From: Basidiobolus meristosporus CBS 931.73
Taxonomy: Eukaryota > Fungi > Basidiobolomycota
Reading direction: 5' to 3'
Length of the DNA stretch: 64,000 bases
NCBI GenBank assembly: GCA_002104905.1
Contig: MCFE01000007.1
Coordinates: forward strand, 203,060-267,059
The notes beneath the pieces were generated by a model. It searched no databases, had not been told where the DNA came from, and saw nothing but the letters and a program-made list of their open reading frames with translations. Position 1 is the first letter of the stretch. Each line of letters begins with the position of its first letter. A program made the translations under genes and the position numbers. Of the stretch, positions 55,773-64,000 are shown piece by piece.

Positions 55773-55870
55773 GGGGGGGGGAGACAGTCATCAACAGGTG
55801 AAGTCTTTATTTTAGTTGAAGCAAAGAAGCCAGCACTACTGCTCTAGCTTTGACACTATAGACTGTAGCT
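55773..55870 (-). mobile_element. About 100-bp diverged 3'-end remnant of the LINE seen at 61265-64000
   Basis: ggggagacagtcatcaacaggtgaagtctttattttagttgaagcaaagaagccagcactact... aligns to 61268-61365 and is followed by TTAGGG x2. Confidence 0.8.
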
Positions 55871-55887
55871 TAAGGTTAGGGTTAGGG

Positions 55888-57098
55888 GTCTAAATTCTAT
55901 TATTGAATCTGATAAAGTATATTAATACCACTTTGACTTGATTCAAGTTGAATAGTGCAAATTGTACAAAGAAACTATATCTATAGTAATGTAAAGGTCA
56001 AAATACTGTCAAAATTTAGGGGAGGGAAAGTCACCAAGTTGGTGAAATCTTTATTTGAGTTAAGAACTAATCTAAGTACAAATAAAGAAGCCAATTAAGA
56101 GGCCTATGTTGTAAAAATTTGTAATTCCACCTGAATATTCACCTAACTTAGTCACTTAGATCATTACCCTCAAATCCTAGAGAATACTGACCAAATTCCT
56201 TGTTGGGATTTACTTAGAATATTTTCACCAAAATACCAGGTACCCAGAATATGAAAATTCTCAAAGTTGTCCAAACTGTTGCAATATTCTGAGGAGTATT
56301 GGAAGTGATGTGGAGAACTAGAAGATTTACATGTTATTCACTTGTAGATTTATTGATCAAAAGTATGGTATTTATACTTTTGATAAAGTAGAGGAAACAA
56401 ACGTGTAGAGTTTGTTAAGGAAGGTCCCAAGAATATGTGTGCAAAGTTTGGGGTCTTTTGGACGACTTTGAGAAAAATAATAATCTGGGTACCTGACAAT
56501 TTGGTGAAAATATTCTAAGTAAATCCCGACAAGAAATCTAGTCAGGACAGAATGCTAATCACAGAATAAGATCTATGTGACTAAGTTAGCATGAATATTT
56601 AGGTGACAATTCAATAATTACAACACAAACAGCCCCAAACTTTGCACACATGTTCTTGGGACCTTCCTTAACCTATTCTACGTGTTTGAAATGCCAAGAC
56701 TAGGTAAAAGTATAAATACTACCTTTACATTTGATAAATCATTAAGTGAAAACCACATAATTTACTTGTTCTCCAAATCACTTCCAATATCTCCAAGACT
56801 CTTACAACAGTCTAGAACCTCTCTAATAAGTAATCTAACTTATGTTTTGTTTCATCTCTAATGTTTGTTTCAATAAAGTAAAGCTCATCAGGGGTAAATA
56901 TAAAACTCAAGGGTTTTAGGGGAAGTACAAATTGTAGATGTTTCTGATCAATATAATCTAAGACTGGAACATTAGGGTTAGGGTTAGGGGCCTTAATTCT
57001 TTTATTGAATCTGATCAAGTATAGTAATACTATTTCAACTTGATTCAAGTTGAAAAGTGCATATTGTACAAAGAAGATATATCTATAGTAATGTGAAG
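55888..57098. repeat. About 110-bp AT-rich direct repeat (55888-56000 and 56990-57098), each copy just after TTAGGG tracts
   Basis: aattct.ttattgaatctgat.aagtat...acttgattcaagttgaa.agtgca.attgtacaaagaa..tatatctatagtaatgt.aaggt in both copies. Confidence 0.85.
56107..56810. repeat. Interleaved inverted repeats in X-Y-X'-Y' order
   Basis: X about 56107-56275 is the reverse complement of X' about 56457-56625. Y about 56280-56453 is the reverse complement of Y' about 56633-56810, with a 39-nt block (56415-56453 vs 56633-56671) showing one mismatch. Confidence 0.88.
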
Positions 57099-57348
57099 GT
57101 AAGGGTTAGGGGATGATCATCACCAAAGGGTTAGGGTTAGGGTTCTAGTGCTTTATTGGGATAATGAGTATTGTAATGGAACATACATGCTAAAGGAGCC
57201 AATACTAGCTGATGTGAAGCCTGTGTAAGCAAGAGGTATAGCTGGGAGTGTTCAGAGTGTGAAAATTATGTCAAAGTGGTTTGAACATGAAAGGGCTAAG
57301 GTAATTTCATAGTAGCTGGTAATCATTTGTGTTAGTGGTACAGATATT

Positions 57349-58260
57349 TCAAGGCAGAAGCTCAGGTCTAATTGCAGCTATTATGCAATATAATCTTCTG
57401 ACCAAAGCTCTCTGAGTATGAAACTGGAAGAGTGCATCAGTATCCTTGAATTCAAAGCATCTTTCAGCATGAGTATAGTAGAAGGGCTGCTTGCAGATTG
57501 GGCACTTGGAGCCCAGACATATGGTATTCATCCTCCATCTTATAGCCTGGAGGGAATAGAAGGTGCTCTTCAGGTACAATGACACATCAGCACCACTATG
57601 TGTGTGTCTACTGTCTTTTCTGATAAGCCTAATTCTATCCCTTGATGTAGTAACTTGTGATATATTCTGAAGTCTCCTTTGATGCATCGCAACCCAAAGG
57701 GGAATCTGTCCACCAGGAGGTGCACTGCTGTTGGCTAGCACATATTGTTTGTAGCCAGCTGGGCAATGTACTCCTTTTTTGATTAAAGAGTTTGGAGTAG
57801 TGTCTATTCTTCTTCCTACTATGGCATCTACCAAAGCCCTCAATGGGTTGTCAGGGCTAGACTTTGCAAAGTGCTGGCCAAACCTGATACTTAAAGTCTC
57901 AAATCTCTGGGATACTGATTCAATGCCAGTCAAGCTTTGAATTAATCTATGGTACTGTTTAGTATGATACAGAGAAGAACTTACTACCCAGCCTAAGCTT
58001 TCCCTTTGTACTAGTTCAATTCTGTGCAAGATATCAGGGCTGAGAGTGAAGTGCATCATTGGGGCAGAGTACTCCCAGCAAGATCTTAGGAAGGATTTGA
58101 ATAATTGCAGTCTAACAAGGGGGGGCCATCTTGAACCTTTTGCCTGCAAAGTTTTCAGTAGTGCAAGAGCTTTTGATATACATTTGTCAACATAAAGTTG
58201 CCAATCAACACCAGTGCTACATACAGGTAGGCCTAGATAGCTGTAATAACTGGGAGCAGG
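57349..58260 (-). pseudogene. 5'-truncated ORF2 of a second LINE lineage (RT motif 7, thumb, C-terminal CCHC finger)
   Basis: YSYLGLP, LFKSFLRSCWEY, ELVQRESL, CPICKQPFYYTHAERC. Open frame, but it begins right at a TTAGGG/3'-motif junction. Confidence 0.8.
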
Positions 58261-58265
58261 AAGGG

Positions 58266-58660
58266 TTAGGGGGAGGAAAGTCACCAAGTGGTGAAATCTT
58301 TATTTACTTATGACAAGTATTTAAAGAAGCCAAGTTAATCTGAAGTAATTCCTAGAAAGCTAGGTCTGAGAGATATCTTCCTGGTAAGCCAGGTCTGAGA
58401 GTTGAGAAGCTGAGTGGTACTATATTTCCTAGTTAGCTAGGTCTGAGAGAGGTTTCCTGGAAAGCCAGGCCTGAGAAGTGAGAATCTGAGTATATCTGAG
58501 GTGAGTTGTACTGATTTGCGGTAGCTTGTTTGTGGCCAGAATGGCCAGTAGACTGGGGGAACTGAGGGGTATTTCTGGGCGATCACTGGCCAAATTTACT
58601 AGGCAAATTTGACCAATTAGCATTTCAAGGATTTCAGCCAATCAGAGCCTTTACTTTGCC
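58266..58660 (-). mobile_element. SINE-like unit, copy 1 (5'-truncated, no tRNA head)
   Basis: Closely similar to 59811-60205. Confidence 0.8.
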
Positions 58661-58794
58661 CGGTGGTAGGGGAGGGAAAGTCACCAAGGTAGGTGAAATC
58701 TTTATTTGATTTCAGACAAGTCTAACTACAAATAAAGAAGCCAGCTGGGAATAGAAGATTCCCAAAGTAAATACTAAGTTGAATATGAATAAAT

Positions 58795-59523
58795 CTAAGC
58801 TAAAGTTAAGGCAGTATCCCAGAGTACACTGGAGTTCAGGTTCATGGGGGAGTGAAGTAGATAAGCTTGAGAGATATAATAATCTTTGAGGAAGTGGGTA
58901 ACAGCAGGTGAAGGGGAGTTTTTGATAAGTGAAGTGAATCTTGAGAGCAGAGATTCCTCTAAGGAGAAGGTCTTGTAAACTGGAGAATCAGGAAACTCTT
59001 TAAAGGCATGGTCAGTAGGTTCCCAGTAAAGCTGGTCAGAGACATTTTGAGAGAACTCTTTAGCAATACTTTTGTCAAGTACTACCTCCAGAGTGTGATG
59101 GTTGATAAATCTCATGTTGACAATCTTGGATAAGTTGTAACCTTGTTGCTTGAGATACATCCTATGCTCAGATATAGGAATAAACTCCACATTGGCAAAG
59201 TAGCAGACAGCCCAGTCAGTAGCAGGAGGCAAATCAGAAGTGGCAGGAAACTTTCTTTTGGTCTTGGGAGGAGCAGCAGGATGTCTTGAGGGAGCAGGAA
59301 CAGACTTTTTGACAACTTCAGAGTAGGAAGAGTGAGCAGGAGCAGATGATTCTTGGGGAGTCTTGTTGGCAGGAAGGGTTGGCACAGGGACAATAGATTC
59401 TTGCAGATCAGAGAAGGCAGAAAAGAGCTTTTGAACTTGTTTCTTGAGTAGAGCATTTTCAGCTTCAACAAGAGCAGGCCTTTCCTCAAGGAAAGAAATC
59501 TGAAGGGAATGGAGTGAAGGCAT
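58795..59523 (-). CDS. LINE ORF1/gag-like protein in a unit with no RT
   Basis: ATG 59523 (MPSLHSLQ), 242 aa. Coiled coil (LVEAENALLKKQVQKL), SYSEVVKK, P-rich linker, RRM-like YFANV...ISE.R..L...G...SKIVNMRFI...LEVV. Bounded by the 3' motif at about 58670 and TTAGGG at 59796. Confidence 0.68.
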   Translation of the reverse strand: MPSLHSLQISFLEERPALVEAENALLKKQVQKLFSAFSDLQESIVPVPTLPANKTPQESSAPAHSSYSEVVKKSVPAPSRHPAAPPKTKRKFPATSDLPPATDWAVCYFANVEFIPISEHRMYLKQQGYNLSKIVNMRFINHHTLEVVLDKSIAKEFSQNVSDQLYWEPTDHAFKEFPDSPVYKTFSLEESLLSRFTSLIKNSPSPAVTHFLKDYYISQAYLLHSPMNLNSSVLWDTALTLA

Positions 59524-59563
59524 AAGAAATAAGAAGAAGAGGGTAAGATGGGGTGGGTGGGAG

Positions 59564-59790
59564 GGAAAATTAGCAGGGAGAAGAGAAGGAAGGAGCAAAA
59601 ATTCCAGAAGTCAGAATTTATAGATGGATGGACAAGGGTAGATGGATGGATTATTCCTGGGTTAGGAAAATTAGCAGGGAGAAGAGAAGGAAGGAGCAAA
59701 AATTCCAGAAGTCAGAATTTATAGATGGATGGACAAGGGTAGATGGATGGATTATTCCTGGGTTAGGAAAATTAGCAGGGAGAAGAGAAG
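59564..59790. repeat. 101-bp tandem repeat (2.25 copies) upstream of ORF1
   Basis: ggaaaattagcagggagaagagaagg... restarts at 59564, 59665 and 59766. Confidence 0.92.
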
Positions 59791-59810
59791 GGGATTTAGG
59801 GTTAGGGTTA

Positions 59811-60338
59811 GGGGGGGAGGAAAGTCACCAAGTGGTGAAATCTTTATTTACTTATGACAAGTATCTAAAGAAGCCAAGTTAATCTGAAGTTATTCCTAGA
59901 AAGCTAGGTCTGAGAGATATCTTCCTGGTAAGCCAGGTCTGAGAGTTGAGAAGCTGAGTGGTACTATATTTCCTAGTTAGCTAGGTCTGAGAGAGGTTTT
60001 CCTGGAAAGCCAGGCCTGAGAAGTGAGAATCTGAATATATCTGAGCTAAGTTATACTGGTTTGCGGTAGCTGAATTGTGGCCAGAATGGCCAGTAGACTG
60101 GGGGAGCTGAGATGAATTTCTGGGCGATCACTGGCCAAATTTACTAGGCAAATCTGGCCAATTAGCATTTCAAGGATTTCAGCCAATCAGAGCCTTTACT
60201 TTGCCCAATGGTTGATCAAGCCATCTCCCAATGAGCACACATCAATTTTATTAATCAAATTTTTGCTGGATCCAGGATTTGAACCCACAACCATGGGTAT
60301 GGAAGGGTTAGGGATAACCACAAGGCTAAGTGTTCTTG
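59811..60338 (-). mobile_element. tRNA-derived SINE-like unit, copy 2 (full length)
   Basis: A box and B box at canonical tRNA spacing, about 390-nt structured body, LINE-type 3' motif. Period 533 bp to the next copy. Confidence 0.78.
60275..60328 (-). promoter_or_regulatory. Pol III type-2 internal promoter (A box 60328-60318, B box 60285-60275)
   Basis: Minus strand TAGCCTTGTGG(TTA)...GGTTCAAATCC. Second copy at 60858-60848 and 60815-60805. Confidence 0.7.
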
Positions 60339-60342
60339 GGTT

Positions 60343-60868
60343 AGGGGGGGAGGAAAGTCACCAAGTGGTGAAATCTTTATTTACTTATGACAAGTATCTA
60401 AAGAAGCCAAGTTAATCTGAAGTTATTCCTAGAAAGCTAGGTCTGAGAGATATCTTCCTGGTAAGCCAGGTCTGAGAGTTGAGAAGCTGAATGGTACTAT
60501 ATTTCCTAGTTAGCTAGGTCTGAGAGTTGTTTCCTGGAAAGCCAGGCCTGAGAAGTGAGAATCAGAATATATCTGAGCTAAGTTATACTGGTTTGCGGTA
60601 GCTGAATTGTGGCCGGAATGGCCAGTAGACTGGGGGAACTGAGAGGAATTTCTGGGTGATCACTGGCCAAATTTACTAGGCAAATCTGGCCAATTAGCAT
60701 TTCAAGGATTTCAGCCAATCAGATCCTTTACTTTGCCTGATGGTTGATCAAGCCATCTCCCAATGAGCACACATCAATTTATTAATCAAATTTTGCTGGA
60801 TCCAGGATTTGAACCCACAACCATGGGTATGGAAGGGTTAGGGATAACCACAAGGCTAAGTGTTCTTG
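60343..60868 (-). mobile_element. tRNA-derived SINE-like unit, copy 3 (full length)
   Basis: Near-identical to copy 2, with a few substitutions. Confidence 0.78.
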
Positions 60869-60870
60869 GT

Positions 60871-61260
60871 TAGGGGGGGGGGAGGAAAGTCACCAAGTGG
60901 TGAAATCTTTACTTACTTATGACAAGTATCTAAAGAAGCCAAGTTAATCTGAAGTAATTCCTAGAAAGCTAGGTCCGAGAGATATCTTCCTGGTAAGCCA
61001 GGTCTGAGAGGTGAGAAGCTGAGTGGTACTATATTTCCTAGTTAGCTAGGTCTGAGAGAGGTTTCCTGGAAAGCCAGCCCTGAGAAGTGAGAATCTGAAT
61101 ATATCTGAGCTAAGTTATACTGGTTTGCAGTAGCTGAATTGTGGCCGGAATGGCCAGTAGACTGGGGGAACTGAGATGAATTTCTGGGCGATCACTGGCC
61201 AAATTTACTAGGCAAATCTGGCCAATTAGCATTTCAAGGATTTCAGCCAATCAGAGCCTT
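60871..61260 (-). mobile_element. SINE-like unit, copy 4 (5'-truncated, capped by agggttaggg)
   Basis: Matches copy 2 up to cagccaatcagagcctt, then telomeric repeat. Confidence 0.8.
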
Positions 61261-61327
61261 AGGGTTAGGGGGGAGACAGTCACCAACAGGTGAAATCTTT
61301 ATTTCAGTTGAAACAAAGAAGCCAGCG

Positions 61328-63982
61328 CTACTGTTGTAGCTTTGATACAAGAGTGTGTAGCTGAGGGGAATTTGTAGGTAAGTTAATAAGAAGTGATGAT
61401 AGTTCTTCAGTGCTCAAGACACTGTTCAGTGGGAAGGGGGGTAGCAAGAGAGGTAAGAATGACTTGTGAACAACATTAATGAGGGGAATGTGATAAGGAT
61501 TGATATTCATCATAAAGGGAGTGTGCTGCTGCAGATATTGCTGCCAAAGGTCTGTCAAGTACTTCAGGTAGGCCAGCTTGGGTTTTTCTGACTGCAGAAT
61601 ATAGTGAGCAAACTTCTTGACTTCAGGATCTCCGAGTATAGTTCTCCAGCAGGAGCCAGGTGTTGTGTGGTGTGTTCTCTTCCAGGCCTTAATCAGTGGG
61701 TTGTTGCAGTTGTGAAGTCTGAGGTATAATCTGGTTCTAAGGTAGAGAAGTCTGATCTTATAGGGCATAAACCCAAAAGCACCAAGAATAGCATGTCTGT
61801 AGGGGCATTCAGGCAAATGAGGCACCAAGGAGGTAATGCACCATACTGCAAACTTGTCAAGCTTAGTGCAGTCTCTAGAAGTAAGAGAGAGAAGTGGTAA
61901 GCCAAATTCCAGGACAGGGAAGACAAACTGCTTGAGTAGAAGGAGGCAGCTGGGAGCTGAAGTTGTAGGAGGAGTAACAGCCAGTAGCTTGTGGAGTGCC
62001 TGTCTTGCCAGGATAATTCTCTTCTTCAGGTGTGCTCCAGAGTCTAGTCCAGTAGGAAGGAAAGGAAAGCCAAGATATGTAGCAGAAACCTGAGCAGGTA
62101 GAGTGGAGTTCTCCAAGTTGATGGGAGAGCCCAAAGGTACTGTCTTTGCAATGGAAAGCTGGAGATTATTCTTCTGCAGATACTGGTGGATGGTCTGGGA
62201 GTCTTGTTGCACACTGGAGGAGGATATTCTGATGTCATCAGCAAAGAGAGTAACCAGGCAGTCAGCTGAGAGTCTTGGGAAATCATTCAGGAAGATGGCA
62301 AACAGTATAGGACCAAGCACAGAGCCTTGAACCACTCCATTAGGAACTGAGAACACAGCTGATTGCTCACTTGGGTGCAGAATTCTTGCTTGTGGATCCA
62401 GAAACAGAGACCTGACAAGGAGGGTGAGAGAGGTACTGGAGAAGCATTGCAACTTGGACCAAAGCAGATTTCTGTCAACTGAATCAAAGGCCTTAGTAAT
62501 ATCAAACAGAACAGAGGGATACTTGCACTGGAGAGAGTGATCTTGGCTAAGTATGACTGCATATTCCAAGGAGAGGCCAGGAACAAAGCCAAACTGTGCA
62601 GGATGAAACTTGAGAGAGTCAGAGTAGAGCTCCTGAGCAAGCAGAAGCTCAAACACCTTTCTGCAGGTGGGCAGCAGAGATATTGGCCTGTAGGAGCTAG
62701 GATCCAGGTGCTTTCCTTTACCCTTGTACAGTGGCAGAACATTTGCAAAGGACCATTCCTCAGGAGTAGAAAGCTGGGCTGAGCATTGCTGAAACAGTGG
62801 AAGCAGAAGTGCAGACATGGCCTTGGTACTAGTCTTCAGAAGCTCATAGGAGATTGTGTCCACACCTGGAGCAGTAGAGTTGGGAAGCCTCTTGAGCACA
62901 TTATGGATTCTCCTTTGATCAAGTGCAAGTGGGATGGGCAGAGTCTTGAAGTCAGGATGAAAGCCAGGAGTTGAGTACTGCTTTGTAGAGAAGAAGATGT
63001 TAGCCAGCTGTTCTGTTGAAGGTAACTTCCTGGAAGAGGGCCTCATTGCCCTGTAGAGTCTTGATACTGTTCTTGTTATAGAGTTGGAAGATTGCAGAGG
63101 CAAGGAACTCATAATATGATCCCAGAGCTGAGTATGCAGAGTGTGGTGAATTGCCTTGGAGTGGTGTATTGCTGTCAGGAGGAGGTTCTCTGTTTTTGGG
63201 TTAGGGAAGCTCAGGTAGCTTTGTTGCAGGGCTGAAACAATGGATTCCCATTTTCTTGAGGCAACCGCAGTAGTCTTGCATGGCAGTGAGAGGGAGGCAG
63301 ACACCAGAATCAGATGCTTCACAAAGAGCCAGGCAAAGTTGAGATCATCTGGCAGAGAAAGTAGCAAACTGGCAAGCTTCAAGTAGTTCCCAAAGTCTTT
63401 CTTCTGATTCTTGGTAGCTTTGTGGGTGAGCACAGTAAGTTTTGGCAGCTTCCTCTTCACAACTGGTTGCATAGAAAGGGACCAGGCTGGGTGGTCAGAG
63501 GCTCTCAAGGATCCTAGCTCAGCTCCAGAGAATTGCTTAACTTCATTCACAAAGTAGAGGGCAGCAGCAGAAGGGCAGATCCAGTCAACACATCTTTTCT
63601 CAGATTGAGCACCTAGTGCTAGCAGGTGGCTTTCTCTCAGGAAGTTCAGTAGGAATGTAGACCTTGGCTTCATTCTTGCAGTCAGAGTAGTCTTGTTCTC
63701 AGGATGGGGAATGTTGAGATCTCCAAGCAAGATAACAGGTGTTGATATAGATTGTTGGTATTGCTGAACCTTCTGGCATATAACTTGCACTTCCTGAAGG
63801 GCTAGACTTGGAGGCAGATAGCAGAGCACCAGACTGATAGTTGGCAACTGGAGAGCAGCACAGTAAGGGGAGTAAAGAGGAACACAGAGCTGAGGAGTAT
63901 TGATGGTAGAAGAGATGAAGCAGATAGAGGAGGTATTCTTTGTTCTAGGAGTAGAAAAGCAATATAGATTAGTCAAAAGCAA
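61328..63982 (-). CDS. Non-LTR retrotransposon ORF2: APE endonuclease + reverse transcriptase (5' end beyond window or broken)
   Basis: APE motifs CYLPP, LLGDLN, VDWI, SDH. RT motifs TAPGVDTI, YRPISLL, QFGFVPG, DITKAFDSV, GVVQGSVLGP, LFADD, YLGFP. The stop codon lies immediately next to the shared 3' motif. Confidence 0.93.
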   Translation of the reverse strand: MLLTNLYCFSTPRTKNTSSICFISSTINTPQLCVPLYSPYCAALQLPTISLVLCYLPPSLALQEVQVICQKVQQYQQSISTPVILLGDLNIPHPENKTTLTARMKPRSTFLLNFLRESHLLALGAQSEKRCVDWICPSAAALYFVNEVKQFSGAELGSLRASDHPAWSLSMQPVVKRKLPKLTVLTHKATKNQKKDFGNYLKLASLLLSLPDDLNFAWLFVKHLILVSASLSLPCKTTAVASRKWESIVSALQQSYLSFPNPKTENLLLTAIHHSKAIHHTLHTQLWDHIMSSLPLQSSNSITRTVSRLYRAMRPSSRKLPSTEQLANIFFSTKQYSTPGFHPDFKTLPIPLALDQRRIHNVLKRLPNSTAPGVDTISYELLKTSTKAMSALLLPLFQQCSAQLSTPEEWSFANVLPLYKGKGKHLDPSSYRPISLLPTCRKVFELLLAQELYSDSLKFHPAQFGFVPGLSLEYAVILSQDHSLQCKYPSVLFDITKAFDSVDRNLLWSKLQCFSSTSLTLLVRSLFLDPQARILHPSEQSAVFSVPNGVVQGSVLGPILFAIFLNDFPRLSADCLVTLFADDIRISSSSVQQDSQTIHQYLQKNNLQLSIAKTVPLGSPINLENSTLPAQVSATYLGFPFLPTGLDSGAHLKKRIILARQALHKLLAVTPPTTSAPSCLLLLKQFVFPVLEFGLPLLSLTSRDCTKLDKFAVWCITSLVPHLPECPYRHAILGAFGFMPYKIRLLYLRTRLYLRLHNCNNPLIKAWKRTHHTTPGSCWRTILGDPEVKKFAHYILQSEKPKLAYLKYLTDLWQQYLQQHTPFMMNINPYHIPLINVVHKSFLPLLLPPFPLNSVLSTEELSSLLINLPTNSPQLHTLVSKLQQ

Positions 63983-64000
63983 TATAGATTAGTCAAAAGT

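Follow-up and report, generated by a model that had tools for sequence, protein, structure and literature searches.

A putative tRNA-headed SINE with an internal telomere motif in a retroelement array of Basidiobolus meristosporus

This report concerns a set of non-coding repeat units near the right end of a 64,000-nt stretch of the Basidiobolus meristosporus CBS 931.73 genome (contig MCFE01000007.1, positions 203,060 to 267,059; this whole stretch is 'the window', in whose own coordinates positions are given below). We interpret the unit as a short interspersed element (SINE) that is partnered with a telomere-targeting long interspersed element (LINE). The stringent SINE/LINE pairs, such as UnaSINE1/UnaL2 (PMC5786205), share with this unit a head-body-tail organization, A and B boxes and a 3' stem-loop module derived from the partner LINE, and they too are non-coding, present in high copy number and accompanied by 5'-truncated copies. 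The B. meristosporus units differ from these pairs in being inserted only at telomere-repeat junctions, in one orientation and in head-to-tail arrays; their 3' end is a C-run plus telomere repeat rather than poly(A) or a microsatellite, no target-site duplications were seen, and a telomeric 10-mer lies inside the head.

Telomere-targeted non-long-terminal-repeat retroelements provide a second point of reference. MoTeR1 and MoTeR2 of Pyricularia oryzae and the FoTeRs of Fusarium also form arrays that are split by short TTAGGG tracts and that include, as here, a short non-autonomous partner (MoTeR2), telomere-like 5' repeats and very short 5'-truncated relics (PMC8381367, PMC12857005). However, MoTeR2 is an internally deleted relative of MoTeR1 and not a tRNA-headed SINE, and the 5' repeats of MoTeRs form arrays of variants (CCCGAA/CCCAAA) right at the terminus of the element, whereas here one exact 10-mer lies 26 nt inside (PMC8381367, PMC12857005). 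HeT-A, TART and TAHRE of Drosophila and SART1 and TRAS1 of Bombyx likewise build oriented, head-to-tail and variably 5'-truncated arrays at chromosome ends, and HeT-A, a non-autonomous element with open reading frame 1 (ORF1) only, depends on a partner that encodes reverse transcriptase (RT), as members of the present array would; the Drosophila and Bombyx systems differ in having poly(A) ends, and no SINE transcribed by RNA polymerase III (Pol III) is reported in them (PMC5537684, PMC7265360). SART1 requires at least three TTAGG repeats (PMC5537684, PMC7265360), in contrast to the junctions described here, which often hold about one. There is also a parallel with the template of telomerase RNA, which like the SINE motif is a C-strand sequence of ~1.5 repeats within an RNA that is reverse-transcribed at chromosome ends; unlike telomerase RNA, the whole SINE RNA would be copied into DNA, and we obtained no match to any Rfam family and identified no template-boundary or pseudoknot elements.

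Full-text literature searches returned no Pol III-type, telomere-specialized tRNA SINE, and no report of a telomere element or a SINE from Basidiobolus; to our knowledge, SINEs are few in fungi. We view the locus as combining two known kinds of system, the SINE/LINE partnership and the telomere-targeted retroelement, with a conserved internal telomere repeat as the new point. Our preferred reading, to which we assign a probability of about 0.68, is that the unit is a non-autonomous SINE made up of a decayed tRNA-Gly head with a Pol III promoter, a LINE-type tail and a retained telomere 'seed'.

Anatomy, abundance and shared tail of the SINE units

A one-orientation retroelement array, with the minus strand as its sense strand, occupies the right end of the window (55773-64000). 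Read on the plus strand, every array element opens with 1-3 TTAGGG units, after which come a G-run and then the complement of a conserved tail. The right edge of the window (64000) falls inside the LINE, and the G-strand orientation points right, as expected for a chromosome end. The SINE copies and their 3' modules are as follows.

59807-60339, minus strand: SINE unit 1, full length, 533 nt (BLAST with unit 2 as query)
60340-60868, minus strand: SINE unit 2, full length, 529 nt (sequence and BLAST)
60869-61260, minus strand: SINE unit 3, 5'-truncated at unit position ~389, joined via TAGGGTTAGGGGGG to the LINE tail
58266-58667, minus strand: SINE copy 4, 5'-truncated at unit position ~405, 94% identical (BLAST and tail model)
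60337-60412, minus strand: SINE 3' module, comprising a GGCTTCTTT...AAAGA hairpin, a TCACC-ACTT-GGTGA hairpin, a C-run and TAACCC (tail model R1 and fold)
59802, 60869 and 58260, minus strand: starts of further SINE 3' modules

Units 1 and 2 stand head-to-tail, followed by the truncated unit 3; the two full units are 97.4% identical over 532 nt (BLAST), and neighbouring units diverge by 2.6-3.4%. For the two truncated copies the BLAST alignments span 60876-61260 and 58269-58667. The initial annotation of this DNA had described two full units of ~525 nt, close to the lengths that we find, and the minus-strand string that it quoted occurs verbatim in both. The unit is non-coding, its longest open reading frame (ORF) being 67 aa; a 41-aa ORF in the head had no homologue in a protein look-up, and none of ten window ORFs was present in the protein collection by exact look-up. 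The fold of the whole unit has a z-score of -1.7. At the SINE-SINE junctions (CTT-GGG-TTAGGGGGGG and CTT-GG-TTAGGGGGGGGGG) the overlap with the end of the previous unit is 2-3 G only, so that the cDNA end of the previous element, or one added repeat, would suffice as primer.

Logan contigs from two B. meristosporus DNA runs were mapped onto unit 2. Between 2081 and 2090 contigs fall on the unit, with a summed word depth of ~5e5-1e6, against ~90-120 for long contigs that reach it and are presumably unique; these values suggest an abundance of ~10^3-10^4 copy equivalents, a rough figure, as summed depth is not copy number. Depth over the head nearly equals that over the body. The same contigs contain many joints at which varied internal positions of the unit lead, via 0-3 telomere repeats, into the start of the next tail; a spread of truncation points like this is the hallmark of target-primed reverse transcription with 5' truncation. 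A variety of unrelated sequences, with GGGTTA at their ends, also lies upstream of tails. In some of these contig variants (window 60335 and 60344), the SINE carries extra TTGG at its 5' end and the length of the junction G-run varies, which could reflect slippage or template jumping at the SINE 5' end. A second organism yielded a contig that matches 60595-60845 at ~95% identity.

The tail ties the SINE to the LINE. A covariance model (R1) was built from 11 tails of different families, some of them from the window and others from LINE relatives sampled elsewhere. R1 finds eight tails in the window, all of them minus-strand matches within 55.7-61.3 kb that score 55-71 bits; the four SINE tails account for 55-66 bits (E 4e-12 to 5e-15) and the LINE tail for 71 bits (all five at E <= 4e-12), which bears out the earlier proposal that the unit ends in the 3' motif of the LINE. 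Each of the eight tails is followed by TAACCC or variants of it. SINE and LINE tails have a common two-hairpin fold and then a single-stranded C-run and UAACCC; the sequences of the inner loops differ. Apart from this shared 3' module, BLAST detects no similarity of the SINE body or head to the part of the LINE within the window, the 5' end of the LINE lying outside it. The last ~75 nt of the unit are the two-hairpin, C-run and UAACCC module of a telomere-targeting LINE family with apurinic/apyrimidinic endonuclease (APE) and RT domains, and the first ~75 nt form the putatively tRNA-derived head. We also note a tail-only mini-insert (GGTGATGATCATCCCCTAACCC, 57100-57133, 34 nt) between telomere repeats; extreme 5' truncation, to ~20-30 nt, does occur.

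The tRNA-Gly(UCC)-like head and its promoter boxes

The head carries the following features.

60794-60865 (unit 2) and 60264-60335 (unit 1), minus strand: tRNA-Gly(UCC)-like head, 72 nt (window scoring and alignment)
60848-60858 (unit 2) and 60318-60328 (unit 1), minus strand: A box TAGCCTTGTGG, 10/11 to TRGCNNAGTGG
60805-60815 (unit 2) and 60275-60285 (unit 1), minus strand: B box GGTTCAAATCC, 11/11 to GGTTCRANTCC

The claim that the two boxes stand at tRNA spacing holds in both full units: the gap between them is 32 nt, the A box begins 11-12 nt from the 5' end of the unit, and the expectation for an A and B box pair is 0.017 per 128 kb of Markov-shuffled sequence. The Trp-like anticodon (CCA) that had been proposed for the head was rejected, that reading being off by one; the loop is CTTCCAT and the anticodon is TCC (Gly). 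A head-derived pattern (GTGGTTAT-N5-8-CCCTTCCA-N10-18-GGTTC), scanned across a metagenome collection, matched 29 loci, at 23 of which ARAGORN calls tRNA-Gly(UCC), the other six being chance matches; the scan retrieved tRNA genes and no SINE relatives. With a yeast-type tRNA-Gly(UCC) from this collection (L009:2043-2114(-)) the head aligns end to end over 72 nt, through exact runs of TTAG, GTGGTTATC, ACCCTTCCA and GGGTTC, and its D-loop/A box, anticodon loop and T-loop/B box have all stayed in native register. When all 127,856 72-nt windows (both strands) were scored against two eukaryote-type tRNA-Gly(UCC) genes, those of L009 and L035, the two heads came top, with 20 versus 12 for the best unrelated window, and in exact register. 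We consider it quite probable that the head is a decayed copy of tRNA-Gly(UCC) that has kept its promoter boxes. A further observation is that one tail variant of a relative (L001:5599-5647) shares an exact 14-mer, GTGGTTATCATCCC, with the same L009 tRNA-Gly(UCC), which may hint at why tRNA-Gly was recruited, or may be chance.

Bearing in mind that the similarity to a tRNA is collinear over 72 nt though tRNA models are non-significant, several results have to be set against our interpretation of the head. ARAGORN, with default and with relaxed settings, finds no tRNA in it, and Rfam gives no match to a 106-nt head slice at E <= 10; Rfam searches of 64 kb, 1.9 kb and 106 nt, at gathering thresholds and at E <= 10, yielded only two chance small nucleolar RNA matches (E 2.3 and 5.5), both from the 1.9-kb sequence. 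Scored with R2, a covariance model of 12 tRNA-Gly(UCC) genes, the head reaches just 9.3 bits (E 2.4), and the six chance pattern matches, taken as controls, score no better than the head under the tRNA-Gly covariance model. An nhmmer tRNA-Gly profile does not find the head at E <= 100, and the head does not fold as a cloverleaf (fold z -0.3). Furthermore, the comparator tRNAs were picked via the head-derived pattern, which biases the comparisons towards a match, and they stem from the metagenome collection rather than from B. meristosporus itself. The polymerase and the transcription start site, too, are read from sequence, and the chance of finding no TTTT in one unit is as high as ~0.05 under a first-order Markov null.

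The sense strand does lack TTTT in all four SINE copies, as had been said of the two full units, and it has no terminator at the unit end. The partner LINE is also TTTT-poor (4 observed versus 12.8 expected), so the TTTT absence in the SINE is weak evidence for Pol III: it fits this polymerase and is not diagnostic of it. In most copies among the DNA-run contigs the 5' end of the SINE is uniform, 2-5 nt upstream of tRNA position 1. The head most likely holds an internal Pol III promoter, with a predicted RNA start 2-5 nt upstream of tRNA position 1. The initial view of a Pol III SINE that parasitizes a telomeric LINE fares well as regards structure: the unit is non-coding and abundant, has A and B boxes and the LINE 3' module, stacks head-to-tail via telomere repeats and shows many 5' truncation points. 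We infer that it would be transcribed by Pol III and mobilized in trans.

Telomeric motifs in the SINE head, the partner LINE and other array members

Four sets of coordinates define the internal motif in the SINE and in its partner.

60834-60843 (unit 2) and 60304-60313 (unit 1), minus strand: internal telomeric 10-mer CCCTAACCCT, on the former D-stem 3' side and anticodon-stem 5' side
61259-64000, minus strand: partner LINE, with its ORF at 61328-63982 and its tail at 61259-61307 (RVT_1 2e-25; Exo_endo_phos_2 3e-4, a weak APE match)
63198-63206, minus strand: internal CCCTAACCC in LINE ORF2, codons F-P-N-P, with the core CCTAACCCA at 63197-63205
L001:3568-3576, L002:3097-3105, L008:3011-3019, L038:2562-2570, L039:1867-1875 and L006:2343-2350: the ORF2 motif in LINE relatives

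In both full-unit heads CCCTAACCCT sits between the A and B boxes, and we put at ~0.003 the probability that ~520 nt would by chance hold a telomeric 10-mer so oriented. The motif corresponds to tRNA positions 23-33 in the alignment to the yeast-type tRNA-Gly(UCC), with which it shares 7/10 bases (CATCCCACCCT versus C-CCTAACCCT); it is therefore a small edit of a natively C-rich segment and not a swapped-in block. About three substitutions and one deletion separate the two, a count that could be lower relative to other tRNA-Gly variants. The initial annotation was right to place the motif at the D-stem and anticodon-stem; the clean replacement that it described there does not stand.

MoTeRs encode a restriction-like endonuclease, unlike the partner LINE, whose endonuclease match is APE-like. 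Relatives of this LINE (48-80% protein identity), with an ORF1 of ~430-500 aa and an ORF2, were found in ENA and Logan metagenome contigs; they bear the same tail and CCCTAACCC end, after which other tail-bearing fragments follow. Because relatives with the same tail occur in these contigs, the LINE system is, by this sequence evidence, conserved beyond the B. meristosporus genome. In the contigs of the LINE relatives (L001-L008, L038 and L039) tails are present and a SINE body is not. In one relative, L002, the two contig ends overlap (L002:1-30 and L002:5040-5075), which implies a tandem LINE-LINE junction, and the LINE 5' end (TTGCATCCATCC...) comes directly after CCCTAACCC.

A scan for telomeric 8-mers places CCCTAACCC at the homologous position in every LINE relative, and F-P-N-P is encoded as TT(C/T) CCT AAC CCA in 6/6 LINE lineages. 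A codon alignment of the six lineages shows how unusual this is: at just 21/226 amino-acid-invariant degenerate columns is one codon kept throughout, single-codon usage at invariant prolines is limited to 2/33, both of them within the motif, and CCT-AAC-CCA is the sole run of three all-identical codons. Since CCTAACCCA exceeds every other invariant nucleotide run, those of the RT core included, in 1989 aligned columns across six lineages of 48-80% protein identity, the internal telomere repeat of ORF2 appears to be under selection at the nucleotide level. FPNP is located in the APE-RT linker and was not found in more distant LINEs; folding predictions for the LINE RNA rank the motif as unusually single-stranded (percentile 80-100), a weak result in an RNA that is G-poor.

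Given the nucleotide-level conservation of the same 9-mer in the partner LINE, we regard CCCTAACCCT most likely as a retained telomere seed and not an accident. A function for the motif within the SINE is plausible, not proven; the original idea that the internal motif matters is strengthened in that the LINE keeps this 9-mer at synonymous sites. Several facts pull the other way. Telomeric 9-mers occur ~3 times per 128 kb by chance and the motif is partly inherited from the tRNA; its accessibility in the predicted SINE RNA is merely average; and its conservation across lineages was measured for the LINE, not for the SINE itself. The DNA-run contigs show no excess of 26-nt leader-only copies, which internal priming would create. 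On the side of selection, at a single rare joint, 60840->60876, a tail is attached directly to the internal GGGTTAGGG; each of the two runs has one contig with it (depth ~220).

The remaining features of the SINE and its neighbours are these.

58668-59795, minus strand: ORF1-only ('gag-only') element with the same tail type
60426-60568, minus strand: 76-nt duplication inside the SINE body, bearing four short hairpins
60158-60232, plus strand: four CCAAT in the same orientation, 22-25 nt apart, within the SINE (ATTGG on the sense strand)

The 101-bp repeats at the 5' end of the ORF1-only element each bear CCTAACCC (59659-59666 and 59760-59767). CCAAT clusters of up to four are also present at 60690-60764, 61222-61251 and 58613-58642, with ~0.2 CCAAT expected per such span; a cluster of this kind could act as an NF-Y-type promoter, whether away from the chromosome end or towards it. 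Elsewhere in the array, two copies of an element of ~110-130 nt without a hairpin tail (55888-56015 and 56990-57099), each right after (TTAGGG)2-3, look like another array member, and at 57126-58265 a second LINE family is represented by a 5'-truncated element whose ORF (57349-58287) has no Pfam match and whose tail, CCCAATAAAGCACTAGAACCCTAACCC, is different. On the 5' side of the LINE, at the window edge, there is a perfect 20-bp tandem repeat (63955-63999, 2.2 copies).

Proposed mechanism, alternatives and significance

We hypothesize that Pol III would start at the head and read through the unit, which has no terminator of its own, and that the LINE reverse transcriptase would bind the shared two-hairpin module and copy the SINE RNA onto G-strand 3' ends, primed by pairing of the terminal CCCUAACCC with TTAGGG, or with GG(G) at the end of the previous element. 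The outcome would be head-to-tail arrays with variable 5' truncation. The internal motif could enter this scheme in two versions that are not separable from each other. As DNA, GGGTTAGGG would lie 26 nt from the new chromosome tip and would become a priming site once the tip frays, for a telomere protein, telomerase or the next element; as RNA, the internal motif would anchor the transcript to the G-overhang. We entertain, as a tentative possibility with odds somewhat short of even, the broader proposal that an exact telomere repeat inside the elements, (C)CCUAACCC, serves a function and is under selection throughout the consortium, namely in the SINE head, the LINE ORF2 linker and the 5' repeats of the ORF1-only element.

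Of the other accounts of the internal motif, the most serious, though we doubt it, is that CCCTAACCCT is functionless, having arisen by drift in the natively C-rich tRNA-Gly segment (CCCACCC) of a master copy and been inherited by its progeny. That account can draw on the seven bases that already match yeast-type tRNA-Gly(UCC), on the near-chance frequency of telomeric 9-mers elsewhere in the window, on the lack of a leader-only excess with only one rare joint at the motif, and on the T and A substitutions, which also form a local GGUUA/UAACC hairpin; it has to contend with a LINE that keeps the same 9-mer at synonymous sites in six lineages, with an 8-mer version that is repeated in the ORF1-only element, and with three mutated positions that all gave the exact telomeric base, for which we estimate a chance of ~0.04. 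Ten nucleotides amount to 1.67 C-strand repeats, which is template-sized and in the same orientation as the terminal repeats, and the initial annotation had accordingly suggested a surrogate template or decoy for telomerase or a telomeric reverse transcriptase. We find this very improbable: no Rfam family, telomerase RNAs included, matched at E <= 10, evidence for a template boundary or a pseudoknot was not found, the depth shows no surplus of the 26-nt leader, and the motif is partly paired in the predicted fold of the SINE RNA. The same annotation had named the opposite outcome, a mere junction of fragments, and that the internal GGGTTAGGG joins a tail fragment of another element to the SINE body is the least credible proposal of all. 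The leader (AAGAACAC...GTGGTTATCCCTAACCC) is loosely like tail variants such as the one at L001:5599-5647, and the 34-nt tail-only insert at 57100-57133 shows that such pieces exist; however, R1 gives no match to the 35-nt leader at E <= 10, compared with 55-71 bits for real tails, and on this ground a tail-fragment origin of the leader was rejected. In addition, the tRNA alignment runs collinearly across the motif, and in the copy population the depth is continuous, the whole head being at near-body depth.

Two further alternatives bear on how the unit is expressed and how the arrays grow. The tRNA resemblance might be coincidental or convergent, with transcription by RNA polymerase II (Pol II) from the CCAAT cluster, from a neighbouring promoter or by array read-through. 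The failure of all tRNA models, the four periodic CCAAT within the unit, an absence of TTTT that is only marginally unusual and the missing sense-strand terminator, owing to which Pol III would run into the next unit, all lend themselves to this account; we nonetheless think it unlikely, given the perfect B box, the 10/11 A box and their native spacing, a head that is collinear with tRNA-Gly(UCC) and the best of all the windows scored, and the uniform 5' end of most copies just upstream of tRNA position 1. Slightly less likely still is that the arrays grow mainly by recombination, through break-induced or telomere-attrition-induced replication that invades interstitial telomere motifs. Identical head-to-tail units parted by short telomere tracts could be produced in this way, and MoTeR arrays do amplify via recombination after TERT knockout (PMC8381367). 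Against this stand the many 5' truncation points, each followed by a complete tail, the varying junction lengths, the many unrelated sequences that tails adjoin and the 2.6-3.4% by which neighbouring units differ. Recombination and retrotransposition can, of course, coexist.

If the broader proposal of a selected consortium motif is true, thousands of tRNA-headed SINE copies help to maintain chromosome ends in a telomerase-bearing fungus. The consortium motif, if functional, could serve either as an RNA anchor for the G-overhang or as a DNA seed for capping, telomerase extension and priming of the next element. The SINE appears to be one of the main components of chromosome ends, beside its LINE and ORF1-only partners, in an organism that still makes TTAGGG repeats, and the system would stand between telomeres kept by telomerase alone and those of Drosophila, which are made of retrotransposons. 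The conserved internal repeat in the LINE coding sequence, mirrored in the SINE head, offers a mutable handle on how ribonucleoproteins of retroelements may find chromosome ends, prime on them and re-seed them.

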